From: Pavona decussata
Taxonomy: Eukaryota
NCBI GenBank assembly: GCA_977016875.1
Contig: CDRNST010000027.1
Span: forward strand, 2,976,001-3,040,000
Length of the DNA stretch: 64,000 nt
Direction: 5' to 3'
Below are positions 19,521 through 57,971 of this stretch, piece by piece. Made by a program: the position numbers and the translations under genes. Under the pieces are notes generated by a model. That model was given only the letters and a program-made list of their open reading frames with translations, had not been told where the DNA came from and did not search any database. Positions within the stretch are counted from its first letter, which is position 1, and the number at the start of each line of letters is the position of its first letter.

Positions 19521-20099
19521 TTAAGCAGCGTTTTGACTGTTTAAAAAGCGTTCTAAAATAACTGCTTTCGTCGAGAGAAGATCATAGTCCATTTCCTCTT
19601 GCTGAATATGCCTTCTAATCTCAGCGGAATGTCCATCTTCAGGATATTTTCTTGGGTGAAAATCCCAGCTGTTGAGCCTTGGAAAACTTTCGGCCTTAGA
19701 GATCATCGGATGCGAAAAAGTCTGTCTAAGCTGATTGTGTTTCAGTAATCGAGGATTTGACCTTGGACTACCAGTTCTGACATTTTCTTCAGCTATTAGT
19801 TCTCTGTTGTTCACGTTCGGAAGCTTAGATGCATCTTCAGATTTTCTTCTCCCTTCAAGGGCTGATCTGATCAGTTGCATTCTTCTTCGGTTGGAAGGTG
19901 ACCCACTAAGCTCTACAATCTCGGTTTTTCCCAGTTGTGATGGCGAAAATACCGGCGAAATAACTCTTGTCAGTCTGTCACAGTTCTCAGGCAACGAAGG
20001 TAAATGCTGAGATAACGGCAAACTTGATCTTCTTGAAGACGAAATATCCGGGCAAAAATCGTCGAAAAGAGCCGGTGTATACGGTCTATGGTTCCTCAT
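19521..20099 (-). CDS. Orphan Ser/Arg-rich protein, type A (192 aa)
   Basis: ATG-to-stop ORF; C-terminus HIQQEEMDYDLLSTKAVILERFLNSQN aligns with the ORFs at 40502 and 54137; AATAAA downstream at 19133-19128. Confidence 0.8.
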   Translation of the reverse strand: MRNHRPYTPALFDDFCPDISSSRRSSLPLSQHLPSLPENCDRLTRVISPVFSPSQLGKTEIVELSGSPSNRRRMQLIRSALEGRRKSEDASKLPNVNNRELIAEENVRTGSPRSNPRLLKHNQLRQTFSHPMISKAESFPRLNSWDFHPRKYPEDGHSAEIRRHIQQEEMDYDLLSTKAVILERFLNSQNAA

Positions 20100-22899
20100 A
20101 ACGTTTTTCTTTGAACTAAAAACTCTTATACGCAGGACGAGTTAATATCACACAGGGTCCTGTTATCTGAGAAGGAGGGGGTGAATGAAAAATATTTTAA
20201 GCGGACTTTAGTCTGTGTATGTGTACGTGTGTATCACAAGTCACGACTAGAAACAATTACTGATGTTCCAATGGCATGTGCCACTCAAAATACGCTTTTG
20301 TCTTACGATAAGGGTCAGTGCGAAGGGGTTGCTTTACCATTGTTTTATTGACCCCAAACAGATTAAAAGCGATACCTCAATGCAATGGTTGAATTCCAGC
20401 TACGGCTCAATGAAGCTTTTCTTTCGGCGACAACTGCAAGTGCATGCTCTAACACACACATTGTTAGAGAAAGTTCGGTTTTCTTTAAAAAAACGTGCGT
20501 CTTACTCTACCTTTAACCTCGAATCCATCGCATGCTCTACTCACCGGCTACCTTCTGAAAGGAAATATTTGTGCATGCGCTATACCAGTGGCGTTTCAGC
20601 TGATTTATTTTATTAAAACAAATAACCTTTAGTTTAGTATCAAGTTGCACGTGAGCTTGCTATTCGCTATGAGGTGAAGGCGCGTGAATTGCCGCACGCG
20701 TGACCGCCTAGCCATTCCATTTTGTGCGTGAGAATACTGGTCACGGTCGGATGGTGCAGCCACGTAAGAGGAGTTGTTTGACGTGCACTTACACGATAGA
20801 CGTGTTAGTAAGATAGCTTGTGTATCAGCAAGGGCGGTTATAGCTAAAATAGCTCGTGACAGATTTGAAAGAGCGGCTGTCTATCCGACTGTTATCTATT
20901 TCTTTTCCTTGGCGCTGAAGAAGATTTTGTGCCAAAAATGAGACAATTATCTTTTTTCAACTATACTGCGGACAAAAATCAATGGAAGCTACGATTAATT
21001 CAATTTTCTTCCCAAAGTTTTATGACATCTTTTATCAGTCTGACGACATCATGAAGACCAATTTAACCTTCTTTTTCTGATATGCAGTTCCTTCCGGGTA
21101 AATTGACTTTCCGACGCACGTTCTAGACAGATTTTTACAGCCATGTATATTTTCATGAGGTAAATAAAAGACGGCTGATATTTATCCAAATTATTCAATG
21201 ACATAGTTATTTAATTAGACAACCACAATCAAGGAATGTGCGCATGTCCAATGCTGAATTGGATAAGGGTAACGCGGGCTCTGGGAACGAGATTGGACCT
21301 CCGGATGCACGCGAGTTGCTGCAACGGAGTCATGACTTTTGTTTCTCACAAACTTAACCTTTTAACAGTTGGCTTATTGTGAAGTTTTGACAATCTCGCA
21401 ATTATAAATTTAGTTAGTAATGGAGTTTCAGATAAGATTGCGTCTTCGTTCCCTGTGGTTGCCGATGACTTATTATGCACTGAGACAAAACGCAACCGCA
21501 GGCACGGGAAGACATAACACTGCCTTTCCGTCTCTTTGTTCCAATGCGAAAAATTTGCCACGACACTGAAAATACCAAGTGCTACAAGTGGTGGCAATGG
21601 TTGCAGCCCCTCCAATGTTTTTTTTCCTAGCTGTCTCATAATTACAATATTCTGAACAGCGCGGTTTTTCGTTACTGAGATACCTTGTGATGTCCTTTGT
21701 AAGATGAGGCTAGTTTTATGGGTTATAGGGCTCCTCAGTGGAGATCCGTGACTTTGTCCAAGATGGCCTCCATACTGGAGAACGGAAATTTGCAAATTTT
21801 TGGTCAATAGACATGAAGCATATATTAATTTATCCACAGGTTTTGGAAAGTCCCTGATATGTAGAGAACCGTCACACCATTATTTGTACCTCAGTAAAAC
21901 AGTAGTAATTAACTTGCCATGGCTCATGATACATTAAAGCGGTCTCGTCGCTTGACCGTTTGGCAGTCACTTTCACGTTTCCCTTCATCGCAACACTGAT
22001 AAAAGTTAGTCCTTGCAAATCCGATAACACCCAAAGATAGCTTTGCCCTTCTCGTTCTTCTGGAAGGGTCTTTTCCAGAGGCATGCAGCTAAAACTAGAG
22101 ACGAGTTTTCACATCCTGGTACTTTGTTGTGGGAAGGGGGGGATGTTGCAACGATCTCGCCAATATTATAGACGATTTAGTGGCTGCTAATTCTATTTGC
22201 AGCGCAGGCTTCGCTTATTCCGTTCGTTAGTTTTTCGTAAACTTTTGCAGCCAGCAGGTAACTTACTTACAAAAGAGACGTCTCTCTTGCAGCTGGATCT
22301 TCGTGGGTCTCTTTTGCTGTTATGGCCTGTTGCTAACGGCCAAAAGTATAACCGACGGTCAATTGCTCTAAAGAAATCCTTCTCTCAGATTTGCCGATAA
22401 ATTCCATCGGTTTTTTTTTTACACTGTACTTACTTACTGTACTTAACATGTACTTACACTCGTGGTCTTATGCGCCCTCTCTCGCGCAAGATTACTCACA
22501 GTTCCACTTGTTTCAGAAGTCTTGACAAAATGACAAATCAGTGACGAATAGCGAGGCGAATTGATGATAACATCTGCTGCCTCTTACAGGTCCTGGAAAT
22601 GCCCAAAAAGATTTCAATAACTACTGCAAGCTTCTAGAAATGAGGCCTCTGAAGTCCATAAATCAAATATACGCCCACCGTATAACTCTTTTGTCGGTTT
22701 CATTTAATGACAAGAAAACCCTCTTTCTTATCTCACGTGTCGTGCTTCCGTTTACGGCGGCCTTCAGTCGCTTTGTGTTCTGAAACTACTGTACTGATGA
22801 CTCAGTAGATTTTTAAGTCGGCCTTGCTTGCCAGCAATCTTAATTTCTCATGGCTTATAGGCTATCCTTCCCTCTATACATTGTAATAACGAGAGAGAT

Positions 22900-23030
22900 G
22901 AAAACCTCGGTTAAATTTTAATCGTGGATTAGCATTAATCAGCTTTTCACCAACTGTGCCCTAGGCCTGTTTGTTCGAAAGCTAAGCCGATTTTAAAACT
23001 AATCCACGATTAAAAGTTATCCGAGGTTTT
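22900..23030. repeat. Back-to-back MITE halves forming an inverted repeat
   Basis: aaaacctcggttaaattttaatcgtggattag ... ctaatccacgattaaaagttatccgaggtttt. Confidence 0.55.
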
Positions 23031-23326
23031 ATTCTCGTCCATTGAAAATGTTTGTAAAAGCTAACTTTAAGTTAAAGTTAAAGAAAAACTGAGGGATAAG
23101 AATTTTTTCCAAAATTTTTTTTTATCGATTAGTAAATAAACTGGAATCAAAGTTTGTACTAAATTTGAACTTGAAAGGTAACTCGAAAATGGCCTACAGT
23201 ATAAATTGTTCTCGTTAACATTTAGTTTTCCTTATTTCTATGTTTTATAGACACGTGCAACTCGCTGGAACACAGATCCTTATCCCAGTATCCGAACTTA
23301 GTAAGTGGGCCGAGCGACCGTTTCTC

Positions 23327-23466
23327 TAGCCTGCGAGGAAGCTGCCTGTTAGGTCTGTTGGTTTCTCTGTGTTGTTTGCGAGCCACAAGAGGATTGGGGC
23401 GGGGGCCCACGGTCTGGAGGACAATCCTCTCGCGGCTGACCTAACAAAGAGTTTGCTCGCAGGCTA
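23327..23466. mobile_element. MITE with TAGCCTGCGAG termini
   Basis: tagcctgcgag ... ctcgcaggcta TIRs; degenerate 9-bp flanks ccgtttctc / ccttttccc. Confidence 0.65.
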
Positions 23467-24756
23467 CCTTTTCCCCGCCAGGATGTGTTTGATGTCGGAG
23501 AAGCTTGCCACCTGTTGAGGAGCTTGGCTTGAAGTCTACCCTGAATACCTTGCAACAAGAATGGAAATAAAATTACGACGATTTTCGCCCAAAGAACGTG
23601 CATATTAAACGTGTTATGGAAGACTGTTTTGATCTAGATTTGGATTGAGCCAGTATCTGGAGCCGTGATAATTTGGAGTCAAAACTGCCAAAAGTCGGGT
23701 CCGAAAGCCTCAAACAGATTGCGTGGCACCAGGTTTAACTTGTGAAAGTTAATTCAAAGCACTAATCTATCAGCCACGCCTTTGCTGTTGTTTCTGATCT
23801 AGAATTTGTGATTAACTATCCACCGAGCGTGACTAACTCACCAATAACACAACTAACAAAAATAGTACTCAACTCAACTCAAAATATCTCTCGACTTCCT
23901 TCTTATTTTAGCATCAAATAAAAGCATTTTCACTTACTGCGAATGTAACTGGTTTGTATTTTTAGATCGAACAAGATAAGATAAGAAACATTTATATAAG
24001 ATAAGAAACCTTGAAGAAATCGAAAGCACACAAGCCGTCCTGAGATGAAAGCAAAATTTCCATGTCATGAAAGAAAACCGTTGGGGCAGGGAAATCGAGC
24101 CATAAACACAGTTCTAAAATACTGGATCAGTAACAAGTTTCAAATTGTCAATTTGCTTAAGACAATTTAAAGTTGAATCCCAAATTGTTAGTACACCGAT
24201 ACAGGCATTTCAATAAACAGTTAAACAGTCTGATGATACATAAATGTAATGCTTTTTTGTTTATTGCATTGGACAATTATTTACATAGACTGTAATAGTA
24301 AAAATGCAAATAAATACATAAATTGCAAGGGAAATATAGACGTTAATTAAACTAATTAATTAATGTTTTGACTGATAACGTCAATCCTTTTCATTTATCT
24401 TTTACTGTAATAAGAACTGGAAAAAGGCCACAGCTTACTGCGTTTTTCATCACGAAACTACGATCTCATTTTATTTTGATCAAAATCAGGAATGACGTCA
24501 GCGCAGCTAGTCAAACTCCTAAAATACTTCCTCGATATTACACTCTTCAAGAATAAAGCAGTCCTTGTATTTCACACTTCATTGTTGATCTTTACATTAC
24601 ACTGCTTTCAGAGGCCTTCTGTGCTCAGCTTCAACATTTAGTGATTGGTATGTCGCGCACCAAGGATGTTTCATTACATAGTTAGATGCTTGACTGATTG
24701 CCTTTGAACCCGTTGCCAAATTAATCTTGCGTCATGGGCTCGATCTTGGATCAAAA

Positions 24757-25385
24757 TTATTTACCAGTTGGCAATTCATCCCGTTGATGTAGTTGAATCG
24801 ATGGCCGTATCCATGACGTTTTTCTAGTTCTTTGCTTGTTTATTTCACTGTCCGATAAGCTGGCATTTATCGCCGAACAAGCTGAATGCGAGCTCCGACG
24901 AGGTTTTTCAGCGCAAGGCATTGCAGGCAAATAGATGCCCTCTTGTCTTGTTTGTTTTGTTTCCGCATTGAGGGCTGAATGCGAGCGAGAACGGCGATCA
25001 GCGGATAAATCTGCAGGTAACTCAAGATAAATCATTTGGCCAGTTGTCAAAGGACGATTACACGGTGGTAAGGTTGGAAGGTGATGAGTTGTGGCTAGCT
25101 GACTCGGACACTTTACCTTACTGTGATCGCTTCTTTTACAAGTTTCAGCAGAATTCATCAGCTCTCGAAGCTTTTTGCTTCTCCTCGACATGAGCAACTG
25201 CTCGGAATCCAATCCTCTTAGAGGATTGGATTCCGAGCAAGTCTTACAACAACGCTCTCATCCTTACCAAGTTTGTGGTATTTTAGATTCAAAAGGCGGT
25301 CTTGGAAAGAATTCTGTATGGGGATGTTGTTCCAAATTTCTTGTTCAAAGTACTTGGTCGCAGCTCTCCGTTTGGCTTCATTCAT
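24757..25385 (-). pseudogene. Orphan type B gene (CCDC190-like N-terminal coiled-coil) disrupted by a 26-nt insertion; 200 aa if repaired
   Basis: ATG 25385 (MNEAKRR...VVVRL) and ORF 25212-24757 (LDSEQLLMSRR...) join in frame when 25213-25238 is removed; the repaired motif has the same N-to-EQ spacing as the 57210 ORF. Confidence 0.7.
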
Positions 25386-28300
25386 TTTCAAATTCTGTAG
25401 CTTGTGTTTACAACGGGTAACGTTTAGATAACCTTTGGTGACATTTCTCCGTGACTGTTTAAACCTGCGAGCTTTTCGTGCAAACAATATTTGCAGTGGT
25501 ATGTACAAGAGCTCCCTTTGCATTTAAACAATAAAACCGGAACTATAGTACAGTTACCAACGTCACAATTCTGACGTCATAAGCTTGTGTCACGGTGCAG
25601 TTCCACCCAGCCGCAAGGCGTGCATGCAATTCTGCGCAGAGCAAAATTTGTAATTTCTTAAAATAGTTAGGTTCGAAAGACCGAGAAGAGGCATTCCTAG
25701 ACAGAAAATGTTTTAGTTTAGGAATCCTTCAATTGTTTTTGTTTTGTTTATATTTGTTATTAAAATTTTAAGTAAACGTCGCATTCACAGTTTGATCTGA
25801 TAACAAGACATTAAATTTCCATCCATGTGTAACTACGAATCAGTTGAACATTTGCGTCAACAAAAACCTATTAGCATACCGTCTGAGAACATTTTTTTGG
25901 TGTTTTCGTTGGCTAAACGAACGCAAAGATATATTTTTTAACTGAAAAGAATTTGGCTTTGTAATTCATGCAAGGTAAATTCCACTGATTCATAGGCAGA
26001 GAAAGTTAGAAGCGTTCCAATCTAACAATCTCTAATAAAGTTGAAACCTTTCTACACTACATTACTACATACAGGGTACTGTTTATAGTGTTGCACAGTC
26101 CTAATCCATGACGATTTACTTAATTGCTTAATTTCTTATAAGAGAAAGATTTAAGATTTATGTACTGTAGTCAAAAGCAATCAAGACAAACTTTAAAAGA
26201 ATGGGATAATTAAAAAAATAATAGCTTTAGCTAAACAAGCGCCCTGAGCAAAATATTTTGAAAGAAAAATATTTGGATACGATTAAAGTAGCAAGATTTA
26301 ATTTCCACGATCTTTTCTGCCAGTAATTTGATAGTGCACTTTCTTTTCTTTACTCCTGATAGCACCCAATTTAAAATTTAACCAAAAATATCCAAAATTT
26401 GACTTTCTGATTTCAGACAACTCCAATCAGCATGGGAGAAAAAAATCCTCCTGTGCGAAGCTCGACAGCATTATTCTTAGTTGCAATACTAATAGGGATT
26501 AACGTCAACACTTTTGAATCACATTTGCTTCAGTCAGTAACTCAAATAATAAAACGGTTAAAGGTTACAACCCCTCCAAAATTCATCGACAGTATTTTTC
26601 TCATGCTTGGCTGTTCAAGCGTTATTTTTGTCGCATGATATTTTACAGCTTCCATACGGCCAGGGAAATGACGTCAAACTACGTTTTTCTAAATAAGACT
26701 CGGGATTCCAGAGGTTGTAAGATTACAATGACTGTCTCCAAGTTTACAGATTTTTGTTGGTTAAATAAAGACGAGTTTCTGTCTTCGTTTGTGTAGTTTA
26801 AAATCGTGTTTTCAGTGTCGTCACCGTACAACTTTGTGTTCTATCGATGCGTACGAACCTATTCGTACTTCCGTACGAATCTATACGAACTTCACACGAA
26901 CCCACTCGAGCCTTGTGCTACGTACTCGAGATATTTCCGAATAGATGCACGTAATCACCCAACGTCACGGACCTTTCGCAATCCTTAAACTGGACTTCCG
27001 GCCATAAAACGTTTCTTGGAAACTGACAAACAAACCTGAGTCCAAGCCGAGCTACGTGCTTGGGGAAGTAGATTATTTCAAATTAATTTTAAAAAGAATC
27101 TGATGTTGGTCAGTAAGAAAACGTACGTTGACTAGTTGCATGATTGTTTATGCTTGACGGAATAATTCGAGTGTAAGGATATACCACCCACGTTATCATG
27201 GTCAATTTATTGATTTCGTTTATCGTCAAGTTAACACTGAATGCCACTGTCATCATTATCCGTCGGGCTAGCTTTCATCGAACGAAAACCGCAGACTATT
27301 TGTCTTCTAATGGCGTGCGTTTTTCATGTGAAAAAACGCTTTAAGTAAAAATATTTAACTCGGATTTTGATACACGTTATGCTGACTCATTTATACTGTG
27401 AGTTCGACGGATTAAAATGCACGAGCACACTTTACATTATTTGCACTCCGCCAAAAACGCGTATGAGACATGTCAGTAACACGGGGAGTGCTTGCGCAAT
27501 CTCCCAAGCCAGAGGCTCATGTTCAAAGTGCTTGAAAATACAAATCGTATGCTAAGAGTGTCTTGAAAAGTCAAGAGTACGTAAGTTAGTTTAACTAAAT
27601 AACCTACGTATGTTTTTCGTCGCTTTAGCAAACACAGGTGACATCCTTATATGCTTCGTGTTCGATTGCTGATGAAGACGATTTGAGAATAATCGGACGG
27701 ATAAGCTGTTGTATACAGACTGGCTTAACCGACAGCCGGAATCAGAGCAAAGAACAGTCTACTCCAGTTTAAAAAAGTACACCAGCCCTTGGTATCCTTA
27801 ATATGACGTTCGACGAGGTTCCCGGCATAGTAGTTCACAGCGCAAGAGAAAAACAGTTATTCAGTTTGTATAATGGGAAATTAGGGAATGCACCCGTGGT
27901 AAGCAAAGTAGAAATAACACAAATCAATGCCGGGTATAAACGGTACAAAATATTGTTAGTTATTTTAGAGGAAGAAGGAGGAGACTACCCGAAGTTTTCA
28001 CCTTTCGCCAATCTGAAAGGTGTTCCAGTTTAACTTAGTGACTAAATCATCGATCCATTGCCAGTCCGACTATGAAGACTCTTATATAACTTTGAAGGAA
28101 ATGATAGAAGACAAATCAGTTTCAAACAAAGCCAACTGACACTGAAGTGACTTCGTCACTGTCCGTACGTTTTAATTTCCCGCTATTCTTAGTTGAGGTG
28201 GCAAATAAAGACTGGCGTTAAACTGATTACAGTACATCAGTGTTCACTGGCTAGCTTCTGATCCGAACAGTAATCCAGGATTTTGCAGAACCCAGGGAGA

Positions 28301-29329
28301 TCAATTTTACGAGCATTAGCTTATTGCCTTGGGAAAGATATCAAAATTGGGAAGAACTCGTAACATTGTGCTATTTAAATCCATGAGCAATATCAAAAGG
28401 TGCCTCTTGAGTGAAGAGCCCCGTTGTTTTGTCCAGGAGTGTATTAATATTCACATGAATTGCAAAACGCAGAAACAGTTAAAGGTCAAGTTTTATTTTG
28501 CTGCACTCATTCGAAGCGGAAATGGGGAACTATTTATAGTATTCTAGGTCTTAGGGGTTCCTTAGCTCGATTTAGTACAATGAAAGACAAAGCGCATAAA
28601 AACAGATGCCTGCGTGATTACTACATCTTATCACTTGATCTGTTGCAAGACTATGATGACGTCACTTACTGAGTCCGCAGCTACGTCACAAAAGCCATGA
28701 AGTGCCCACCTTTTTATCAAAGCAGTTATAACAAAGCATTGCTATTCAAACGTCTTCACTTTGGCCCTTTTTCATCTGGGCTTCTTTTAAATTTTAAGCT
28801 ATTGAGAATTGCTGAGAGACTGACAACAAAATGAACAACAGAAGTTATATTGTCTTCTGAAGGTTAGTCTGTCTGTACAGTTCCACCCTAACCCTCCCCC
28901 CCCCCCCCCCCTTGTTCCTAAATAGATTTCAGGGAAAACTCTCTACAGCGACCACTGTAACGTAGACAGAATTTAATGGCCTTGCGTTGAGATTTTTTTA
29001 TTTCTACTTTTTCAATTTTTATTTGAATGTGAGGAAGCGGCCATGGAAACAGAGATCATCAGATCATCGTTTAGATCGAAAGTGTAAAACGCTAACAACA
29101 GCGGCCAGAGAACGAATTAAGACTCAAGATTGAAACAATTTGTCCTCAACCAAGACAAACATCGATCAGATTCCACTGACAACGTTTTTACAAAGGATCA
29201 CGACATCGAATTCAGTTGGCTAATGATTCGCCGGTTTCAAGTTCTTTTGTTTGGCGTTTTTAAATTCATAATTAATTGGTTCTGGAAAAATTTAGTTGTT
29301 TGTTTATTTGGCGAGGCTTATTAGTAAGA

Positions 29330-29539
29330 CTTAGGTTCAGTCACAAATTACAAGATTGGATGTACTAATACTGAAGTGCAAGCCAAGAGGACGAAAAAAG
29401 AGGAAAAAGCACGCAAAGAGAAAACTTTAGAAGAGTTGTCTTAGGTTCAGTCACAAATTACAAGATTGAATATACTAATATAAGTGCAAGTCAAGAGGAC
29501 GAAAAAAGAGGAAAAAGCACGCAAAGAGAAAACTTTAGA
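29330..29539. repeat. Tandem duplication of ~110 bp
   Basis: cttaggttcagtcacaaattacaagattg at 29330 and 29440. Confidence 0.9.
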
Positions 29540-31207: not shown

Positions 31208-32017
31208 TTAATAGTAAGTTATTGGCATTGGGTACGGTTTGCCAGCTTGAATGCCACAATTGGCATTTACATTCAGCCCGGCTGATACCAATGGTGTTTG
31301 AGAATAGCTTTGATTCAAGCTGATTTGACCACAGGATACTGCTCCTTGATCCACGTACCATACAGGAACAGTGTAGACATACCTTGGACTGGTGGGTATC
31401 ATCTTTGTTGGATGAGTAAAAGCTTGGGAGAACTGTGGTTGACAGTGTGCGGCATTGATGGCAAGGCCTTCTGGTGGAGTAGGCACATGGCCATCGTGAG
31501 GCATGTAGGTCACAAGGTTAACAGACCCTTGGTGATTCAGGAAGTTTGGGCCAAATGAGGCTGTGTTGCAGCCTGGTGATGAATATTGCTGGATGGTTCT
31601 CGGGTAGTAGTCCATGGTGTTTGTTGGTGGCAAAGCAGGACTGACGGTCTGTATGCCTCCGACAGTCGCAGGCTTCAGGCCAACTGCTGGTGAGATTATC
31701 ATCGCTTGAGATGAGGCAGCATGAACTGAATGGACTGAATCGTACGCGAAATTTCCGCGGAAACTTGGAGAAATGCGCTGTTCTTCAACATCCCATTCTG
31801 TTGAATTCACCATGCTGAAACTTTGCTCAGAACTTGTCGGAGAAGGCGGGACACTGGGGCATTTTGCATCAATTGTACTTTCTTGTTGAGGTAACTCTTT
31901 TGGGGTCTTTGGCTTTGCACCAATGTACGCGAGGTCCACATTGGCGCGCCTTCCATCAATTATTGGCCTTTTGTTTATACAGGCTCTTTCCGCTCCTTCC
32001 TTTGTAGCCATGGTAAC
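31208..32017 (-). CDS. RBM24: RBM24/RBM38-like RNA-binding protein, coding exon 2 (end of RRM plus Ser/Pro/Gln-rich tail)
   Basis: Acceptor AG at 32019-32018; [37 protein letters not shown] matches the family signature VTMAD..[28 protein letters not shown]; symbol denotes the family, orthology not established. Confidence 0.92.
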
Positions 32018-32684: not shown

Positions 32685-32849
32685 AAATCCGTATCCTTTG
32701 GATCTCTGACTGCTTTTCTCACGGATGATCGCCGCTTCAACTATGTCATCAAACTGCATGAAGTACTGTTTCATTGTTTCATCATCAGTGTGATAAGGAA
32801 TGCCTCCTACGAACAACTTAGTGAACTTTGTATCGTCCTCGTCAGTCAT
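32685..32849 (-). CDS. RBM24: RBM24/RBM38-like RNA-binding protein, coding exon 1 (55 codons; 324 aa in total)
   Basis: MTDEDDTKFTKLFVGGIPYHT...SKGYGF carries RNP2 and RNP1; phase-0 donor GTAAGT at 32684; acceptor CAG at 32861-32859 just upstream of the ATG. Confidence 0.92.
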
Positions 32850-40501: not shown

Positions 40502-41053
40502 ATGCAACGAAAGAAAGTGCAACTCAAGCCTGCAAGAGGCGCGGAGGTACAAACGAAGGGCATTGACCTGCATGATCATCACACAAAATCACAGGAGTAT
40601 CTTCGCAAGCCACGCTTTAGACGAGGCGAGGGAAGCAAGAGTAGTCCAACGACAACAAGAGCACGACTCAAAACTCCAGCACTAAACCTAAGATCGCGAT
40701 CGGAGGGAAACCTTATTGCGGCACAACTTGTCGATCTCGAAAGTGGGCGGGAAGTTGACATTCAGCATGAAAAGACTTTGCAACTCCCAAAATTAGGAAA
40801 GGATTTAGCGCCATCAAATGCTCCCCTTGATCATGAACTTCAACAAAAGAAGAGCCCTACAGAAGAGAAGGAAACTTCAAGTAGCAGAAGCGACATTAAA
40901 TCAGGAAGATTTGCAGTACTGCGCTATAACGAACATAGAAGAATGTTCAAAGAGCACGTACAAAAAGAGGAGAACGAATACCAAGCAGATAAGACCAAAC
41001 GCGACATTTTATTAAGGTGGTTAAGTGAACAGAATTTCTCAGATAACAGCTGA
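40502..41053 (+). CDS. Orphan Ser/Arg/Lys-rich protein, type A (183 aa)
   Basis: Strong acceptor ttttctgttctcttttcacttcag ending 40465; in-frame TAG upstream fixes the ATG; C-terminus HVQKEENEYQADKTKRDILLRWLSEQN; AATAAA at 41662. Confidence 0.82.
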   Translation: MQRKKVQLKPARGAEVQTKGIDLHDHHTKSQEYLRKPRFRRGEGSKSSPTTTRARLKTPALNLRSRSEGNLIAAQLVDLESGREVDIQHEKTLQLPKLGKDLAPSNAPLDHELQQKKSPTEEKETSSSRSDIKSGRFAVLRYNEHRRMFKEHVQKEENEYQADKTKRDILLRWLSEQNFSDNS

Positions 41054-47000: not shown

Positions 47001-48848
47001 CTTTGTTGGTTTCATCTTATTTGCAGTTATAGTAACGACCTTGTGACAAGCAAATGGAAGAAAAAATTTGTTTTGATCAGTTTCCGTTTCTTTTCCTATA
47101 TTTTTCCGTTATCAAAATAACTTAACCCGGGAATGGGCCCGGACCAGAGAGAAAATGGACAAGAACAACAACTTACCCTTGCCAACCAACTAATCAAAAT
47201 GAATTCAACAGCTTTGAACTGCGATCCCGTTGGAATGGAGCTTTCTTACGACGATGAGGGAAAGTCGCTTATCCGCCCGTGGAAAAAGTGCTTTTGGTTG
47301 TTGGATAACAAACAACTTACTCAAATAGAAACATTTCTGCGGAACTCCAAGATTTGCCGGAAATACGTACCGGAAGGAACATCATTCCATCAGTCGAGCG
47401 AGGTACAACTATTATGCGTAAACCGGAAATAACAGTAATTATCAATTTTGTTTCCAAAATTGGCGATTTTTAAAAATGATTTTGTGTAGTATTTTGGAGC
47501 CTTTAAGAAAGAGTCGAAGTTCCATTCATAATAAGACCTCTTAAATTCATCCTGCATGAATTATTTCAAAACTTGTCTATTATTTCCCTGCATGTGTGTG
47601 CGTAGCACTGGATTATGGTCAAGTTTCAAAAAGAAAAACCCCTTCGCGCGTATGACAAGATGTGTCTTAACATATCAAGTACGTTATGATGACTGGATTA
47701 AAAATCAACAAATACGTGCATTTTCTGCTTAAAGCTGGAAGTTGGAACCAAATTATGATCCAACGAAAAACAAACAGTGCGACCGCCGACGGTGCCTAGC
47801 CTCTCTTTGTTCAATTGCTAATCAACCTTAAAGGTACTGACTCGGCAAGCAAGCTGAAGTACCGACGAGATGTTTAGCTTACTCTAATTATTGCCACCTT
47901 CTCTACTTTTATAGTCTAGTTAAGTAATTCAGTTTGTACCTCTTAAAACAGCACAAAGCACATTAAGTATTACTCAGTGCTGACTATTACAAACTGAAAA
48001 TGTTGGACCGAAGACCCAAAAGAGGTCATAGATGCGAGTAACAATTCATTGGCATTTTTCCACAACCCTAGCTTGGTGCGGTTGAAAGCAATACTAACAT
48101 CTAACAGTCTAGTTTAGTTCTGAAGTAGATGGTGTTTAAACTTTGAGATTGTACTTACGTTCTACAAATCCCGGAGCAAAAACCACCCTTGTTCCAACGT
48201 GTTAGTCGCAAATTGAAATAGTTTGCCGAAAGCGGAACCAAACTCTTTATGAAGCTTACGCAAGACTACTTTTGAATAAGTACAACGACGGTTAGAGATG
48301 GCGGTAGAATCTCTAGCCACATTAGTCTGGGAGCCGTAAGCTTGTTATTAGCATTTACTTGCAAGAAGTTCAGTAATGTTGGAAGAGTAATTATTGCTTT
48401 CCGGCGCCGCGTGGAAATCATGTGTTTTTGACTTGTTTTCCCCAATTCAAGTTCCGTTTTGGCTGGGCGTTACGAAAAGAAGTAGTTGAAATCACATGAT
48501 TATCATGACCGAGTAGCTTGAGATAATATTACTAAAATACAAGCTGAACTAACATCGAAAGAACAGGGTTTTTTGCTCTCAATCTCGCATCGACTATCAT
48601 AGCTATGTGTAGTGAAAGCAACTCAATGAATTTTCTGGTCCATTTAACACATATCACCTTGGGCAGATAAGACGGTACACTCTTTAGGCGTCATAAACAT
48701 AGCTAAGGATTAAATCCAGGATTTTCTAGAAAACATAAAAAAGGCAGAGGGGGGGGGGGGGGGGGGCGAATTTTTGGACGTGTTTTTATTTGGAGTTGAA
48801 CGATGCCTCATCATAAGACGTCGTGAGACCTGTGATCTGTTCATTCAG

Positions 48849-49040
48849 TATGGGGGGTTAGTTTCTAAAGAACCTGTGGTGCTGCGTCATCGGTGGGGAG
48901 TGGAAACGAATGTTTGGATGTATCCGCAACACTGAGAGTTGATAAGGTAAATTGACCACCGTTAAGAGATTCCAGTGCTAACGTCTTGAGCGTTAGCCCT
49001 TCGTCCGCGTTCTGACGAAGGGTTAACACTCGAAACGTGA
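48849..49040. mobile_element. Decayed Penelope-type hammerhead mini-element (inverted copy abutting a direct core)
   Basis: 48850-49005 is the reverse complement of the 53575-53735 family; direct core CTGACGA-agggttaacactc-GAAACGTG at 49012-49039. Confidence 0.65.
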
Positions 49041-50804
49041 TGAATATTACCGCCTGCGTTAATCTCCGCCGCTTATTGTTAATCTTTGAACTACTTGGCT
49101 ACGTTCGGAGATTTGTCTTAAATTTCCGCATCAAAGTTGTTGTTTACATCCTCAACATAATCGCTACCTCAAAGGTGTTGTTCCATAGCCAGCTTTTCTT
49201 AATTGATTTAATTTTCAGGAACAACCAACGGTTTCAGTTCAAAATAGGAGACTTTTCTCGGGAAGAATGCTCGAGCGCTTCTTCGAATGAGTAAAGTAAT
49301 TTACATAGACGTGCTTGACTGTGAATTTAGTACACTGAAATATTTTTTGATAAAGCAGAGATTGACTGGTTCTTCGTTTCAACAGCTCTCCCAACAACTT
49401 TCTTAACAGCTTTTTACCGTAACAGCAAAATTTTTGAAATTTGAATTTGAATCTTGTCTCGCTCAAAAATAATCAGTACATATCTAATAAATAGATTTAT
49501 CTGAAAAATCAAATATCGTCCGTACGTAGCGGTTTAACGTTTGACACGTCTGTCGACAAGAGCAAGCTTATGTATAACAGTGAATGTTGTCGACTCAGCA
49601 AATAACGGTGTGTTTTAATTTATGAGAAAATTAGATATCATAAATATTCCTCATCGGGTGAGTGTTATTTTTCAAGCCGGTTGCGCTCAGATCTGAATCT
49701 TCCAGATTTTCTTTGATTTCAAAGAATGCCCATAATATACAGCATGGATGACCAACCTTGTCGGATGTAAAGGTGCGAGATGCCACCACATCATTTTCCA
49801 TGCAAAAAAGAATTCTTCGTGTCGATGAGCGAATAAGGTAAATTGATATTTATGGCAAGATACTCACACAAAAGCATATTCGTACAAATTGGGTCTTCGT
49901 GAACGCTTAAATTGGCTTCGCTGGCGCTTTCGGACCTTTTGCGTCTCTATCAATCCGCGAATGAAAACAACACTCTGTCACTTGGAAGAAAACAAACAAT
50001 TACTGGATGAGATAATTCGAAAACACGTCAAATTGTGTCGACTTTTTCAGCTTGTCATAGTTAAAATCTACAGTTTCTTGAGGTCTAAGCTGTAGTATCT
50101 GAGCCGAAATTACAGACGATTTGCCCCATGCTGCTTTGCGAGTTGTGTCCAGCCTCCTCAGTCTTCGCGCATCAGATCGCAGTTGAGTGATTTATAACAG
50201 ATTGGTCTTGAACAGCGGGGAAAGGTGTAGTGTAAACTATTCCTAGTATAGCAAATGGACTTTTGTCCCTTAAATTGCATATTAGTCCCATGACGAAATG
50301 TTTCGTTTAGGCCAGTTATCATGGCATCAACGACTTTATGTTAATCTTAATTGAGACCACACAAAAATTCAACTCGGTCAATGTTCACTCGCCATCGCGT
50401 GACGATGTAAACTGAATATGTTCGCCTTTCCATTAGGTACCTTGGCATTTTAAATTTATTCCCTTCTTTGTTTTTTTGCAAATCGTTGATTTGTTAAACC
50501 CAATCTTCAGTTTTGTTCTTTGCCTTAGATAAGTGAATAAACATCTTACTTTAGATTAGAAATCATTACACAGACCACTGAAACGAGTTAACAAGCAATT
50601 CAAACAAGAACTAATAACAATCGCTCAGTTTTGTAGTTGCCTTTTTTCTAGTGTAACTCTTTGGCTGTCATTGTATCGCCAAAAGAGAGAGAGAGAGAGA
50701 TGACCGGAAATGACAAATAATTTCGATGACATTTAAAATTTTCTATCTGTTTTTTGATGATTTTTTAATCATTGCTTCAATCTTGAGATCATCTCAGTTT
50801 ATGG

Positions 50805-51018
50805 ACTGCAGTCGTCGTCTCTTAGGAAATACCCACACAGGGGCTCAACAGTCGAGAGAGCAAGCTGTTATGAAGGCGAGAAAAAGAACGAATTGGGGCG
50901 GACAAGTCGAGAGGGAGCTGGGGTTTCCCAGTCTCGTCTCACTTTTTTGCTCACTCCAGTCTCGTCAAGAACCTTTTAGTTCTCTCGCTTGGCTCTCAGA
51001 AAGGTGCTGCCAGCAGTA
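50805..51018. repeat. Degenerate palindromic MITE
   Basis: actgcagtc...gcagt ends with internal imperfect complementarity (gcgagaaaaagaacg / ccttttagttctctcgc). Confidence 0.4.
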
Positions 51019-51312
51019 TAACTCAAAGTTAACCCTTTGAATTTCGTGTTGGCTTCGAGTGCAATCAAATGTAACGTCACCCGGTGAGCTGATCGCGATC
51101 GTCCCAGGCCTCACCCCGACACAAAGCTCTGTTCACTCGATTAGGCCTGGGAGAGGCGCTCCCTCCAAGTTTCAAGTTTCAAGTTTATTAAAAAATGTTT
51201 AACATAAAATTCAAAGACAACACTAACCCGCAAGTAGCTAGAGCTAATCTAGGCGGGTAGCGAGAAGACTAATTTACAAGAATTAATTACAGGCCTAATC
51301 GCGCGTGTGATG

Positions 51313-52612
51313 GTCACGTGAAAAGTCTAACTCGATCAGGAATCTCAGCTGTGAGGTCTTCGCTATTACATTGGTTGACAGAAACTCGACCAATAAACAG
51401 GGAATGGATCGGAAAGATTGCGGAATTACGAATGCGTTCGTATTGAAAGATCCATGATCCGATATTGCAGCCGTAGAACTAAAGTGAGATAAGACAGATC
51501 ATGTCCACAAGACTTTTAAACAAGAGCGAAGTTGATTATGTAAAAGTGGTTGAAGTGGACAACTGCATAACTAATAATTAAAATACCCAGCCGTTTGATA
51601 AAAACCAGGAACTGTGTTTGGAAGGACCACCGCCACAAAATAAAAGTACCGGATCCTGTAGTAGAGGATCTAATCAACAACAAATTGTAAAACAAACATT
51701 GCAAAAAAGAACAATTAAAGGCTCTTACCAAGGTTTGATAAGACCGTCTGTGAACCAAGAACCCGTGAACTGTAAAAAAATATATCTGAAATGTTAATTG
51801 TGTTGGGAAAGAAAACCCAATCAGGTATGAGATGAAAAAGCAGCAAGCTATAATTTAACAGTAATTGTTTTGTTTTGTTTTTTTCTTTTGGTTTCTGTTT
51901 GTTTTCTTGTGGTTTGATTTTGTCTCTGACTGTAGGTCATGGAACAAGCTGTACATCTGATAGTCACGTGAAAAGTCCAACTCGATCCGGAATTTCAGCT
52001 GTGAGGTCTTCGCCATTACATTAGTTGACAGAAACTCGACCAATAAAAAGGGACGATTTTAGATTGGGAAGATTGCGGAATTACGAGTGCCTTCGTATTG
52101 AAAGATCCATGATCCGATACTGCAGCCGTAGAACTTAAAGACAGAGGTCTCAAGTACGGCTCTCGATTAAGCCGTTTTCTATTCAAGAAATTAAAGGATT
52201 ACTAAACAAGAGCGAAGTTGATTATGTAACTGTGGAGGAAATGGACAACTGCATAACTAATAATTAAAATACCCAGCCGTTTGATAAAAATCAGGAACTG
52301 TGTTTGGAAGGACCACCGCGACAAAATGAAAGTACCGGATCCTGTAGTAAAGGGTCTAATCAGCAACAAATTGTAAAACAAATATCGCAAAAAGGAACAA
52401 TTAAAGGCTCTTATCAAGATTTGATAAGACCGCCTGTGAACCAAGAACCCGTGAACACTAAAAATATATCAGGAATGTTCATTGTGTTGGGAAAGAAAAA
52501 TAATCATATATGAGATGAAAAAACAGCAAGCTATAATTTAACAGTAATTTTTTTTTCTCCTTAGTTTCTGGTTGTTTTCTTGTGGTTTGATTTGGTCTCT
52601 TACTGTAGGTCA
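51313..52612. repeat. Tandem duplication of ~650 bp containing a diverged Penelope-like 3' end
   Basis: gtcacgtgaaaagtc at 51313 and 51963; internal aaaagtaccggatcctgtagt..ggatctaatc matches the reverse complement of 60783-60860. Confidence 0.85.
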
Positions 52613-52793
52613 CAAAAAACAAACATTACAGGAATAATTAATTCTTAGCATTCACGATTTTGTCTTAGTTCACTGCTCGTTAGTACTCTGGTTTCACTAC
52701 AAAATGAAAACTGAATGATAAAACTGACTGACTTCGCGTTTATTCGTGGTCACTGTGTGGAAAACAACCGCAGGGAGCTCTTAACGCACGTGG

Positions 52794-53395
52794 TTTGAAG
52801 TCAATAAAAAATACTTCGGACTTTGGCTTTTGATATCGCAAACACGTCGCTCATCACGTGCTATTTTTTCCTTCTTGCTTTAGTTTTATTCACCTTTTCT
52901 TATCTTTCTAGGTGAAACTGTGTATCACTTTTCCTTATATTTCGGTATTCCTCTTTAATTGGTTATTATAACTGGTTGCGGGTGGGTTCCGCGGTTTTAC
53001 AGGGACCCATTTAGGGCCCTATAAGCTATAAGAGCCATCTAAAAATCAACCAATAAAAAAAGAATTTGTCATTCTTTAATTAGTCATCACGCCATGATTT
53101 GAAGTCAATAAAAAATACTTTGGACTTTGGCTTTTGGTATCGCAAGTATTTCGCTAGTCACGTGCTAATTTTTCCTTCTTAGTTTTATTCATCCTTTCTA
53201 TCCTTTCTAGGTGAAACTGTATATCACTTTTCTTAATATTTCGGTATTCTTTTTTAATTGATTATCATTACTGGTTCCGGATGGGTTCCGCGGTTTTACA
53301 GACACCCATTTAAGGGTCTTATAAGCAATAAGAGCCAACTAACGATGAACCAATGGAAAAAAAAAATTTGATCGACATTGTTTAATTAGTCATTA
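52794..53395. repeat. Tandem duplication of ~305 bp
   Basis: tttgaagtcaataaaaaatactt[c/t]ggactttggc at ~52794 and ~53098. Confidence 0.85.
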
Positions 53396-53571
53396 CTGCA
53401 GGCTATCGCTTTGTTAATTAATGGATTTGTACACAAGAACTCTAAAAACGTTGGGCTTAAATGAACACTGATGAAGAGCGAGAATAAAATCTGATACTAA
53501 ACAGTAAAAACCATCAAAAGACCTCTATCTCGGCAGCCTGATTCAGTTCGGTGATTACAAGAAAATTTCTT

Positions 53572-53735
53572 GATTCGCTCTGACGAAGGGTTAACGCTCG
53601 AAACTCCAGCACTCGAATCTCTTTACGGTGGCCAATTTACCTTTAGTTATCAACTCTGTTGATAAACCAAACATTTGTTGCTACTCCCCACCGACGCAGT
53701 ACCACAGTTTTGTTTAGAAATTAACACCCTTATCT
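53572..53735 (+). mobile_element. Penelope-type repeat with a decayed hammerhead
   Basis: gct-CTGACGA-agggttaacgctc-GAAA-ctcc-agc; gct/agc and gattcg/cgaatc stems intact, cleavage triplet mutated. Confidence 0.65.
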
Positions 53736-54136
53736 ATTTGTTCCCCAATAAAATGCTACCTCAGACTCGGTGTAACGCGAGAGAATCAAATCCTTTTGTT
53801 TTAGGCAGGAACTTGTCTTCTTTGGCTAAAAGTAAGACCAGCTAACGTTCTTCGAAATTCTGGGGATATTATCCAGCTCAACTTGCGCTACAATATAATA
53901 CAAACTTTATTGACACTCCCTGAAGAGGGCTCTAAATCAGTTTCTAGTATTTGACATGAGTTCAACAGTCCGCAGGTGGCAAGGTGCTAACTTAAGCCGA
54001 ATACTCCGAGTTTCCCTTTAAGTTCTAATAAAACGGTCTGGGAAAAACAGAAAACAATATTTGAGTACGTGTCTCAGATTTTGTCCTTAGGTAAACGACC
54101 TGATAACAGATTAGCGGTGGAGTGATTAGCACTCAC

Positions 54137-54928
54137 TCAATCTGTCTCTTCCTCGTCCGTTTGGTCCTTCAACCATTCAAAAAGCCTGGTAGCTTTTATC
54201 TCGAGGTCATTATGATACCTTGCCTCAGCTTTCTCCAAATGTTTCTGCAAGGCTTGACTGCGGTCGTGTTTGTGAGGGACTTTGGTACCTACCGCGCAAA
54301 GCTTTATACCGTCAACTGATCCTATGTCTTTAGTAAATTTGTGATTTTCTGGCTGACTGATCTGCGGTAATGGCTTCGGAGCAAAAGTGTTTTCTCCTTC
54401 GCTTTCTCTGCATGAAAGTGAAACTATCTCTGTAGGAGCTGGAAGAGAGTGTCTTCTGCCAATAGCTTGGTGTTTCCCTCTGATTTTGGGAAGTGCCACC
54501 GAGTCTGCATCAACAGGTGCTGGACGACGTCCAACACTCAAGCTTCTTGTCATAAGAGGACAAGAGCTCTTTCGCTCCCTGATTTTCTCCTTAAAAACTG
54601 GGGGATCGAGGCTCCTCCGTGAGACTCCAGGCAATTCAGCTTCCCTCGTTTTAATCTCAAAAGCACTACGAGCCTCCAACTGGTGAGGCCGGTAGGATAC
54701 CATCAAGGGACGGCTGAAGACGTTTTGGACGTCAGGTGCATTCGTGAAAGCTGAAGTGGTTGGAGCGTGTATAGAATGTCGTCTGCGTCTTGGTAAGCCC
54801 TTTGCTAGATTTGAGCTGAACGAACTGTGTTCTAACTTCTCGAACGAATTACTTATTTCCGTGAAAGCTTCTGGCAGAGAAACAAAGCGTGGTCTGCTCA
54901 GTTTAAGGACAGTTTTTGAGTCATCCAT
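54137..54928 (-). CDS. Orphan Ser/Arg-rich protein, type A (263 aa)
   Basis: 792-nt ORF; C-terminus HLEKAEARYHNDLEIKATRLFEWLKDQ; many RRxS and RxxSxP motifs; AATAAA at 53911-53906. Confidence 0.85.
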   Translation of the reverse strand: MDDSKTVLKLSRPRFVSLPEAFTEISNSFEKLEHSSFSSNLAKGLPRRRRHSIHAPTTSAFTNAPDVQNVFSRPLMVSYRPHQLEARSAFEIKTREAELPGVSRRSLDPPVFKEKIRERKSSCPLMTRSLSVGRRPAPVDADSVALPKIRGKHQAIGRRHSLPAPTEIVSLSCRESEGENTFAPKPLPQISQPENHKFTKDIGSVDGIKLCAVGTKVPHKHDRSQALQKHLEKAEARYHNDLEIKATRLFEWLKDQTDEEETD

Positions 54929-57209
54929 TAGGAAGGGATCATGGCGGAACGTGTTGCTTTCGTTTTAGCTCAGTGAACTGTCTCGAGCTGTCAAATCACC
55001 GGCTAAAATGCGATAGTTTGCAATTCACTCAAAGTTTTCACTGAAATCTGCATTGGTAGGCATGGTGACTAGGACACTAACCAATCAAATGATTGCTTTT
55101 GACACCAGCATTATTTCCCTTTGTGGTATAATTAACGGGAAATTAATTCAACCTCATCACACTATATGAACAAGTTTGTAAAGGCTGGAAACTGATGTTA
55201 ACACCTGAGTTGCAAATTAAAATTAAATGGTTCTGTCCAAATATAGCATGCCAAAACAGAAATTTGTTGCTTGTCACCCGTTCCGCCAATAATCATTCAA
55301 AAATCATTTTCAAAACTGAAAAATGGCGCTAAATTTCATCATCAAACTCATCAAATATTCTCTCCGATTCATTCGTTCCATTTTCCAAAACGTTGAAACA
55401 ACTAAAACAAGACACAATAGAAGAGTTTCTCCTCAGTGTGGATTCCATTTTAATGACCAATTTACGGAGATGAAATCAAAGTGCCAGGCCAGGTTTGATA
55501 CTCGGGCCGAAGGAATGGGTTAACAATGCAAGTAAGGAAGTAATTTCTGAGAATTGTATGCATGGAAATTAAACATGTAAATTGGTTGTTTAGACTAAGT
55601 GCAATACGAGCAGGACAAGCTAAAGGGAACCCCTGTTAAGCAGTTGCGAATTAGAAAAGAAAGCCGGCCGGAAAAAACGAAGTCAATCAATTAGTTCACC
55701 AAGCCAGAGTTTCTGATTAATAAGTAAATCACATATAACAAAATTTCAGTACACAAACCACTGGCACGCAGTGAGCATTAATAACAAGTAAAGTACTTGA
55801 TTTAACTTCAAAACCCAAATATTTATAAGTGCTTGTCATTGCCTCAAGGATCATTAAATTTTGTATCTTTTCTAAATACTTTCCTGTTGATCAAACAGAC
55901 TGAGTGACCTTGGGATTTATTATCATTTTGGAGTTACTTTCTCTCCCCCGGTCGACAGATAAGCTTGTTCAATGTTCAGTGTTCAATCTTGAACGTCAAC
56001 AATTTAGAGAATGCATGGATTGGATAAGTTTGCCAGGGCGATAAATCATTTATTTTCTTTTGTACCTGTTCCTTCTATTGTTTTCCAAATGAGTGCGCTT
56101 CATTCATAACATAAACAACAAAAAAGATACTTTTAGAACTGAACTGTTTCTCAACTCTGACTCAACTCAAAAAGACCGGACGCACTCGTTTAATAAAAGT
56201 GTTGTGGCAAGAAAAAAAGCGAAAGAGCGTCCAAAAGCACGACCGAGGCGTTTGAATCTACCCGAGAATTATATCGTGATCTTTGAACAGAATGACAGGG
56301 ATAAAATTGATAGATACTCGACTCAAACAATTGGACATGCAGTCAACGGTGAAGACAAAAGATTTTAACAAAGTATTGGTTGCGTTGGTGGAGTTTTGGA
56401 CAAGTTTTTCCGGCGTTATAAGCCTGCTTCAGAAAAAATAAGCTTTCTAGAATTCCAACGTCAACATTTTCGTTTTCTTTGAAACCTCATTTTGAACTTT
56501 TTGCATTTTATCTAAAAGTGGCATTTTTCACTCCCCTCCACTTCAAATTGATTCGACCCTTTAGAGTCGGCGCGTTTTTACAAGTGACCACTTTTTAAAG
56601 TGTTTTCTAAAGGCTCCATGCATTTCAATAAAACTGGCCTATAGCCAAAACCGCACCGAACGCAAGTTGCGAAAACACCTTAAGTTTACAGCCAATCCGA
56701 CCAATTAAGTAAAACGTTATGCTAACTGTAATTTACGTTAGATTACTGTAAACTTTACCTGAGAAACTACAGAAATCATTTGGTTTAATATTGTGCTTCA
56801 GTCAGGAATACATTGCTTTGCATTGACAATGCAAGGCCATGGCGTTTCGTTTTCTCCCAAATAAGCCCATCTTTTTTTGTCCAGGCGTGCTTCAATGTAC
56901 CTGCCGTCACTGTACAGCAAGAATATTATCACTGGATGTAAATTTTATTTTCAATCTCAGCAAGTCTGGACGTGCTCCTATGTTTCTAGCTTCACAGTTC
57001 TCCACGCTTCGCTGCTTGAGTTCATACATGATCAATAACTTATAATGGCACTTGTGATTATTGTGGAATCGGAAAAGGCTGTCGTTAATTAATAATTTCG
57101 CATACTAAGCACAAAGTGTCCAAAGAACACATCAACTGGCCATATTTCGGTCGGGCGCTGAACAAAACTCATTTAACTGCGAATACATACATCGATTGCC
57201 TTACTCGAA

Positions 57210-57971
57210 ATGAACTCTGGCGAGAGAAGGCGTTCGTTAACGAGCGAAAGCGCAGATGGAACCATAAAGAAAAACGAATTCGAGGAGCGTCGACTACAAA
57301 GAAAACTTCTCGAACTTGAAGAACTTTCGGTGAAACAACAAAAGAAACGCAAAGAAGAGCAATTGGAGTACGCTTTGTGCAACCTTTCTCTGGAAGACAT
57401 GGGGAACTTCAGCGGCTTGACGAAAAAGATTCTAAGATCAAGTTTTCTGCCTCCGATTAACCGCAAAGGGAAAGAATGGAGCAGCGACTCGGACGGTCGC
57501 ACACCAGAAAACAGGCGCGACATGATAGCAGAAAGACTAAGAGGATCGAAGATGATTCAAAGATATACGGAAGGCAGAGGGCCACGAAAATTGACCAGGA
57601 CTTTATCTGCAGATTCAGGGATGCTTTCATATTCCGAGAATCCACAGAATGTAACGGAGCAAAGAAACACTGACCCGCCAAATCATTATTCTGCTTTCCT
57701 TAAAATGTATTCCGGTCGCCGAGCGATCTCGTTTACTGAGTTTCAAACTCGCGACAGATCTGATGAAAAAATTGCAGGGGCGATTGCCAAAGACAGCGTC
57801 CCTGCACGATCAGTAAAGACTGACACCAGCTTGTTGATGTCAAGACATAAAGCTCCGAGTGAGGCGATAGGAGCCGGTTTCGTTCAAAATGGACGAAAAG
57901 TGAAACACCAATGTGTTAGCGAAGCCTTGGAATACAAACTTAAGATGCGAGAATTGGCACGGAAATCGTAG
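57210..57971 (+). CDS. Orphan type B protein (253 aa) with CCDC190-like N-terminal coiled-coil
   Basis: 762-nt ORF; NEFEERRLQRKLLELEELSVKQQKKRKEEQ motif; AATAAA at 58173-58178. Confidence 0.85.
   Translation: MNSGERRRSLTSESADGTIKKNEFEERRLQRKLLELEELSVKQQKKRKEEQLEYALCNLSLEDMGNFSGLTKKILRSSFLPPINRKGKEWSSDSDGRTPENRRDMIAERLRGSKMIQRYTEGRGPRKLTRTLSADSGMLSYSENPQNVTEQRNTDPPNHYSAFLKMYSGRRAISFTEFQTRDRSDEKIAGAIAKDSVPARSVKTDTSLLMSRHKAPSEAIGAGFVQNGRKVKHQCVSEALEYKLKMRELARKS

Follow-up and report, generated by a model that had tools for sequence, protein, structure and literature searches.

The locus described here lies in a 64,000-nucleotide (nt) stretch of DNA from the stony coral Pavona decussata (assembly GCA_977016875.1, contig CDRNST010000027.1, positions 2,976,001 to 3,040,000), which we refer to as the window; it is free of N and has a G+C content of about 39%. 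The window holds five orphan genes around a gene encoding an RNA-recognition motif (RRM). Three of them, A1 (19521–20099, minus strand, 192 residues in one coding exon), A2 (40502–41053, plus strand, 183 residues, divergent from the RRM gene) and A3 (54137–54928, minus strand, 263 residues), make up what we call type A. The other two are B1 (24757–25385, minus strand), which is broken in this window, and B2 (57210–57971, plus strand, 253 residues), which is separated by a 2.3-kb spacer from A3, its head-to-head neighbor. Order and strands along the window are A(-), B(-), RRM(-), A(+), A(-), B(+), just as an initial annotation made from the sequence had given them. That annotation also described five single-exon open reading frames (ORFs) of 183–263 residues, which is right in place and strand for A1, A2, A3 and B2 and wrong in size for B1, an interrupted gene with an ORF of 151 residues.

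Coding status of the open reading frames

ORFs of this length are not expected by chance. Five ATG-initiated ORFs of at least 180 residues occur in the window; 100 block shuffles preserving local composition contained 0.01 on average, and their longest ORF was 184 residues. The five candidate proteins are indeed basic and rich in Ser and Arg (isoelectric point, pI, 9.5–9.9; Ser 9–13%; Arg 9–11.5%), and the two kinds of short motif that had been singled out, RRxS-type sites and LPx motifs, do recur. Pooled over the five proteins, LPx[ILV] is seen 8 times where 1.05 are expected, a count reached in 0 of 2000 within-protein shuffles, and R[RK]x[ST] is seen 9 times where 3.1 are expected (P = 0.0025, likewise from within-protein shuffles). 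Since the ORFs exceed chance and both the composition and the motif enrichment are confirmed, the raw observation holds, with the exception of B1.

Relatives retain open frames down to 36–47% identity, and start, stop and length are kept among the relatives of each gene. Word searches recovered nine relatives of A3 (95–38% identity), eight of A2 and six of B1, orthologues of A1 and B2 were located in syntenic loci, and RefSeq gene models for family members exist in Acropora and Montipora. Pairwise ratios of nonsynonymous to synonymous substitution rates (dN/dS), computed with NG86 and YN00, fall below 1 for all five genes: 0.29–0.41 for A1, 0.23–0.41 for B2, about 0.5 for A2 (0.34 over its last 45 codons) and, among intact copies, 0.12–0.72 for B1 (0.12–0.50 with NG86), where the maximum is from two very closely related copies separated by few changes. 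A3 is the highest, at 0.65 (NG86) or 0.93 (YN00) relative to the nearest other species and 0.47–0.57 in other comparisons; over its last 45 codons, which encode the C-terminal helix, deeply diverged comparisons give 0.17–0.24, as against 0.55–0.65 elsewhere in the gene. The tail of the neighboring RRM gene (0.25–0.53) evolves at rates similar to those of the five orphan genes. These values indicate purifying selection of weak to moderate strength, the usual situation for disordered proteins; in type A it is strongest on the helix. The idea of an old, fast-evolving cluster is supported, and the cluster is conserved; orthologues reach down to about 40% identity, and dN/dS spans 0.12–0.93 overall.

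In the A3–B2 region, blastn aligns only the coding parts of the two genes and one 62-bp block with the distant locus L011. With locus L001, aligned blocks that include the coding parts are 69–78% identical, one 40-nt block reaches 90%, and the coding sequences alone are 86–88% identical. Judging from sequence alone, we regard it as very probable that the ORFs are real genes.

The type-A family and its C-terminal helix

A1, A2 and A3 emerge from profile and sequence comparison as a genuine family defined by a helix at the C-terminus. BLASTP aligns A1 with A2 across their last 49 residues (E = 1e-5), and hhalign of the subfamily profiles joins A1 to A2 (E = 1.4e-7), A1 to A3 (1.1e-5) and A2 to A3 (2.9e-5), with all matches falling at the extreme C-terminus of both partners. 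The shared motif is an amphipathic helix of about 37 residues, [DH][RH]xxxΦxxHΦxxxExxY(x5-6)KxxxLxx[WF]LxxQ, with hydrophobic columns 3–4 positions apart and with two Leu and one Gln invariant. A six-frame scan of the window with the helix profile returns exactly A1, A2 and A3, at 65–92 bits, and nothing else. In a maximum-likelihood tree of 38 proteins the three fall into separate clades, A1 (support 100/99), A2 (100/99) and A3 (96/99), each containing several lineages; old local duplications that predate the split of the sampled coral lineages gave rise to the three subfamilies.

Upstream of the helix, the type-A proteins, which are about 170–330 residues long and basic, are predicted to be disordered. 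The AlphaFold test of disorder within type A covers A3, which was modeled from a 21-sequence alignment as a single helix at residues 220–256 with a predicted local distance difference test score (pLDDT) of 67–75; the rest of the protein scores below 60 and mostly below 55. This model and the alignments agree with the earlier description of disordered proteins carrying conserved short motifs. The disordered, basic N-terminal part of A1 contains RRSSLP, HLPSLPE and FPRLNSW ahead of the C-terminal helix IRRHIQQEEMDYDLLSTKAVILERFLNSQ, and RRSSL, HLPSLxE, KLPN[VL] and SFPRLN are conserved in its family; its orthologues are 99% identical in locus L003 (ENA ERZ25073751) and 84% in L004. A2 ends in the helix HRRMFKEHVQKEENEYQADKTKRDILLRWLSEQN, and the alignment of its orthologues shows RRGEGSKSSP, LRSRSEGNLIAAQ and LQLPKL as conserved motifs. 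A3 carries RPRFVSLP, RRRRHSIH, ELPGV, RKSS, ALPKI, RRHSLP and PLPQI, and the motifs conserved in its family are RxRΦxSLP, GRRHSIHxP, TRxAxΦPxL, KRNSW, ALPEI, RRHSLPVxTE and PLPQITQPENH. Across type A, the conserved predicted sites are of the basophilic-kinase kind, with the forms RRxS-hydrophobic, RxRxxSLP and RRxSLP, and are accompanied by [LF]Px[ILV] motifs.

The A3 subfamily has expanded in places. In L011, four tandem A3-type paralogues (4441–5253, 9911–10714, 16056–16862 and 19586–20395) stand beside one B2 orthologue, and L002 has two tandem A3-like genes. Because the L011 paralogues span two A3 subclades, the A3 duplications must be older, and are absent from or were lost in the species of the window.

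We searched 1.84 billion protein cluster representatives with a profile of 55 positions covering the type-A helix; at E <= 1e-3, 26 proteins matched, of which one is a spurious repeat protein and 25 are true. The true matches comprise 22 proteins of 174–326 residues and three short fragments (53–82 residues), with the motif at the very C-terminus in all 25. The named members, from Acropora millepora, A. digitifera, Montipora capricornis, M. foliosa and Desmophyllum pertusum, are labeled only "uncharacterized" or "hypothetical protein". On the tree, A. millepora LOC114948208 (XP_029180623.2), A. digitifera LOC107344142 (XP_015765242.1) and D. pertusum KAJ7383564.1 belong to the A3 clade, and M. 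capricornis XP_068725373.1 and M. foliosa XP_068681130.1 to the A1 clade. Apart from isolated chance matches, neither the window proteins nor 31 relatives match anything in Pfam or NCBIfam; profile searches of PDB returned either nothing or matches at E >= 0.43, and PDB sequence searches were empty. The designation "orphan" therefore holds, and the initial annotation was right that no named family fits, such uncharacterized or hypothetical coral proteins being the only matches. A literature search by accession numbers, locus tags and sample identifiers found no paper on them in the library searched, and none of them has a described function. Type A is apparently restricted to stony corals, within which Acropora and Montipora on the one hand and Desmophyllum on the other represent very distant branches. 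The range of the B families was covered by one word search (with B1), family scans and PDB profiles, and their absence elsewhere is less firm because they were less widely searched than type A.

B1, B2 and the conserved linkage with the RRM gene

B1 is intact in L003, where the locus is 99% identical to the window, and its intact homologues (P0010–P0015) are 200–246 residues long and start with MNEAKRR. In the window the gene is split between an N-terminal piece (MNEAKRR..., 25221–25385) and a C-terminal ORF in a different frame (24757–25212, minus strand), which measures 151 residues from a TTG or 144 from an ATG and has in-frame stops just upstream. The cause is a 26-bp insertion at about 25221–25246 (minus strand), identified by alignment with L003, by reading of the sequence and by an inverted-repeat scan; repetition of TAAGA at this place leaves its boundaries uncertain by about 5 nt. 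The insertion copies the adjoining 20 nt in inverted orientation and creates a perfect 20-nt palindrome (arms 25199–25218 and 25220–25239) that is not present in L003. It shifts the frame and introduces a TAA stop at 25218–25220, which is why the ORF falls outside the size range first assigned to it. Three substitutions close by change the conserved N-I-[FS]-K-Q to N-I-P-I-Q relative to L003. The palindrome looks like the product of a template-switch or fold-back event, or else an assembly artefact, and the break itself may be a true allele, a pseudogene or an artefact of assembly. We also considered B1 as a truncated type-A gene and rejected this, since profile comparison gave E = 0.2–0.47 with only LPx-type motif matches.

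B2 has an N-terminal helix (residues 13–57), a FLPPI motif, a RRAISF motif and a C-terminal helix (234–252); AlphaFold predicts the first helix with confidence (pLDDT 90–95 over residues 21–50), the second helix, and disorder between them. Residues 172–176, RAISF (57723–57737), overlap an RRxS site and presumably fit the RVxF form of protein phosphatase 1 (PP1) docking motifs, possibly in a phospho-switchable way; the equivalents are R-T-I-S-F in L001 and R-P-V-S-L in L011. B2 orthologues are 81% identical in L001 and 58% in L011, and each has an A3 gene as its head-to-head neighbor 2.4–2.5 kb away, so that the spacer measures 2.3–2.5 kb in three species. The only intergenic stretch between A3 and B2 that aligns to L011 is a non-coding block at 56273–56331 (74% over 62 nt, E = 1e-4, blastn), which we regard as a weak candidate for a promoter or enhancer element shared by the two genes.

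The RRM gene lies on the minus strand. Its first coding exon (32685–32849) encodes 55 residues, MTDEDDTKFTKLFVGGIPY...KGYGF, and ends at a GTAAGT donor; its last coding exon (31208–32017, ORF 31208–32011) follows an AG acceptor and encodes the end of the RRM and a long low-complexity tail, with the frame continuous over the junction after KGYGF. When the exons were searched one by one, the best solved relatives of exon 1 were SUP-12 (E = 1.1e-18), hnRNP A2/B1 (2.7e-18) and RBM38 (8e-16 to 1e-15). Orthologous RRM exons carry PF00076, and orthologues of the last exon are found in L003, L004, L006 and L008. Like RBM24, RBM38 and SUP-12, the gene encodes a single N-terminal RRM with the RNP-1 motif KGYGFV; its long tail lacks any Pfam match. 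Orthology to RBM24/RBM38/SUP-12 is likely, and stops short of proof because hnRNP A2/B1 scores nearly equally on the 55-residue exon. In L007 (4955–5763), a contig of 2x coverage, the last RRM exon is in three pieces in different frames, probably through low-coverage sequencing errors; it is intact in L006.

As far as the available contigs go, the genes around the RRM gene keep their order, and linkage of the orphan genes to an RBM24/38-like gene, for which the initial annotation had proposed a microsynteny check, is seen on several of them. ERZ26692694 ctg14895 carries B2(-), A3(+), A2(-), RRM(+), B1(+), A1(+) over about 59 kb, which is the order of the window reversed. ERZ25067868 ctg78957 keeps the arrangement of A2, RRM and B1, with tubulin exons in the place of A1; A2 orthologues adjoin the RRM gene in L009 and L010; L008 keeps RRM–B1; and in L011, B2 and A3 are arranged head to head and the further paralogues already mentioned come next. 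Contigs matched by size alone suggest that A1-, A2- and A3-type proteins are linked in five further assemblies. In L006, no A1 was found after B1, tubulin exons (PF00091, PF03953) lying there instead (17787–18517); similar exons follow B1 in L007 (17798–18528). A 193-residue ORF after B1 in L008 was considered as an A1 orthologue and rejected.

Three further ORFs lie among or beside these genes. A 163-residue ORF with a GTG start (21346–21837, minus strand) sits between B1 and A1; it has no Pfam match and a gene call only in the near-identical L003. Directly downstream of B2 is a 174-residue ORF (59809–60333, plus strand) whose GIY-YIG nuclease domain (PF01541) scores above the Pfam cut-off (E = 3e-5); it is probably a mobile-element remnant. 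In the syntenic block of L001, an ORF resembling a DDE_Tnp_IS1595 transposase (16111–16446) lies between A3 and A2.

Possible function, alternative readings and known systems

The reading that we favor, though with confidence evenly balanced, is that the locus is a conserved stony-coral cluster in which three type-A paralogues and the orphans B1 and B2 flank the RRM gene, and whose proteins may be adaptors under phosphorylation control. The adaptor mechanism, taken by itself, is more doubtful. According to it, the type-A proteins would act as phosphorylation-controlled adaptors that pair through the terminal helix, be it with a second copy, a paralogue or the helix of a partner, and kinases of the PKA/AGC type would phosphorylate the RRxSxP-like sites and thereby create 14-3-3-type docking sites that switch these interactions. 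The genes might also be co-expressed, for example in sperm or ciliated cells, as the initial annotation conjectured. The PKA/AGC consensus (RRxS/T-hydrophobic or RxRxxS) is matched by RRHSI and RxRΦxSLP, both conserved in the A3 family. RRHSLP at A3 158–163 is a candidate 14-3-3 mode-I site, the consensus for which is R-S-x-pS-x-P, and it matches the form R-[SR]-x-S-x-P: R158 is nearly invariant among 21 A3-family sequences, R159 is invariant in a 10-sequence subset, L162 is nearly invariant, and about half of the sequences in the A3 clade have the Pro at +2. It is also conceivable, although we would call it quite improbable, that type A, B1 and B2 together constitute a stony-coral signaling module, in which the A helices would pair mutually or with the long helix at the N-terminus of B2, these complexes would be switched by kinases acting on the conserved RRxS sites, with 14-3-3 as the reader, and shared regulation in one cell type, for example through the A3–B2 bidirectional spacer, would hold the genes together with the RBM24/38-like gene.

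Several observations weigh against the favored reading. The kinase and 14-3-3 sites are read from consensus matches alone, and such short motifs are favored by basic, Ser-rich sequence. Candidate transcripts proved to be genomic or to have no poly(A): Logan contigs L012–L015, of equal length in four runs, match 5.2 kb of the window collinearly at 87% identity and without splicing, and are hence genomic, L016 is of the same kind, and a poly(A) tail was looked for in the JGI contig L017 and none was found. The break in B1 may be real or an assembly artefact, A3 evolves fast, with its dN/dS of up to 0.93 (YN00) relative to the nearest other species, and A1 was not found at its syntenic place in two more distant loci (L008, L006). 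Finally, the taxonomic range rests on five named species.

The initial annotation had sorted the five genes into two types, each defined by a helical motif, and of these type A stands (hhalign E of 1e-5 to 1e-7) and type B does not: no comparison that we made demonstrates a relationship of B1 to B2, or of either to type A, the short motif by which B1 and B2 had been joined lacks statistical support, and type B is unsupported as a family. A common ancestor of all five genes, with duplication of a module made of one A and one B gene, would be an unlikely history. In its favor, B1 and B2 both begin with MN and share K[KQ]NxF[QE][DE]RxL at residues 20–30 (KQNSFQDRLL and KKNEFEERRL; hhalign P = 0.008), a B1 orthologue is the best non-self match of the B2 profile among 7604 six-frame segments (E = 0.83), and A3 and B1 have LPxΦ and [RK][RK]xSW-like motifs in common. 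However, BLASTP of B1 with B2 gives E = 14, the hhalign probability is 4.9%, and HMMER is non-significant in both directions (E = 0.83 and 4.4) in a set of only 7604 segments; the B1 and B2 profiles match type A at E = 0.2–0.47, through LPx-type motifs only, which led us to reject B2 as a relative of type A; and the B proteins are without the type-A helix. An adjacent A+B pair does occur twice, as had been stated, but with B1 and A1 in tandem on one strand and A3 and B2 head to head, and because the orientations differ a simple duplicated two-gene module is unsupported. The genes might also be real but encode basic proteins that bind nucleic acid or chromatin, for instance of the fast-evolving germline kind found among sperm nuclear basic proteins, with the Ser/Arg sites tuning charge. 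Reproductive proteins commonly show a high pI, many Ser and Arg residues and fast evolution, along with clustering and tandem expansion of their genes, and all of these are seen here, yet Arg at 9–11.5% and pI at 9.5–9.9 are far from protamine-like values and conservation resides in discrete motifs and one amphipathic helix rather than in bulk charge; we hold this reading to be rather improbable.

Much less probable still are the readings that deny the ORFs the status of host genes. That they are chance or decaying frames in non-coding DNA, or part of a long non-coding RNA near the RRM gene, would agree with the lack of Pfam domains, the outcome for the transcript candidates and the interruption of one of the five genes (B1) in the window; it is very hard to reconcile with their unexpected lengths, start and stop positions preserved in many species to about 40% identity, dN/dS below 1, coding DNA that aligns where its flanks do not, and RefSeq models in Acropora and Montipora. 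Origin from a locally spread mobile element or virus, to which the GIY-YIG ORF adjoining B2 and the DDE transposase ORF in the syntenic L001 might point, seems to us the most improbable of all, in view of the single copy of each subfamily in the window, the syntenic positions fixed across species and the lack of any mobile-element domain in the five proteins. Overall, what was first observed at this locus is partly confirmed and what was concluded from it partly supported, the type-B family and the size of B1 being the parts that fail.

If the reading as a conserved cluster of adaptors is true, the locus would reveal an undescribed protein family, seen solely in stony corals, including Acropora/Montipora and Desmophyllum, and made almost wholly of short linear motifs and one helix, whose genes share a microsyntenic block with an RNA-binding gene that is conserved. 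Genes confined to one lineage in this way are candidates for a part in cell biology peculiar to corals, and the conserved order offers a handle on how blocks of orphan genes stay together. The finding is not surprising in kind; to our knowledge, orphan families are present in every animal lineage.

In the way they would work, the type-A proteins may be likened to small heat-stable kinase and phosphatase regulators, namely PKI, inhibitor-1/DARPP-32 and the ARPP family, which we take to be similarly small and disordered and to act through few motifs around basophilic-kinase sites; GRRHSIH of A3 presumably resembles in form the pseudosubstrate RRNAIH of PKI. These regulators have no sequence relation to type A (no Pfam or PDB match) and lack its terminal heptad helix. 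With 14-3-3 mode-I clients, which are a client class and not a homologous family, type A is compared by predicted sites alone: RRHSLP and RPRFVSLP of A3 and RRSSLP of A1 fit the consensus and are conserved in many orthologues, whereas the Pro at +2 is replaced in the Acropora-type branch (RRHTLSV). The uncharacterized proteins of Acropora, Montipora and Desmophyllum belong to other species and are 30–57% identical to those of the window, with which they share both the type-A C-terminal helix and the same overall architecture.

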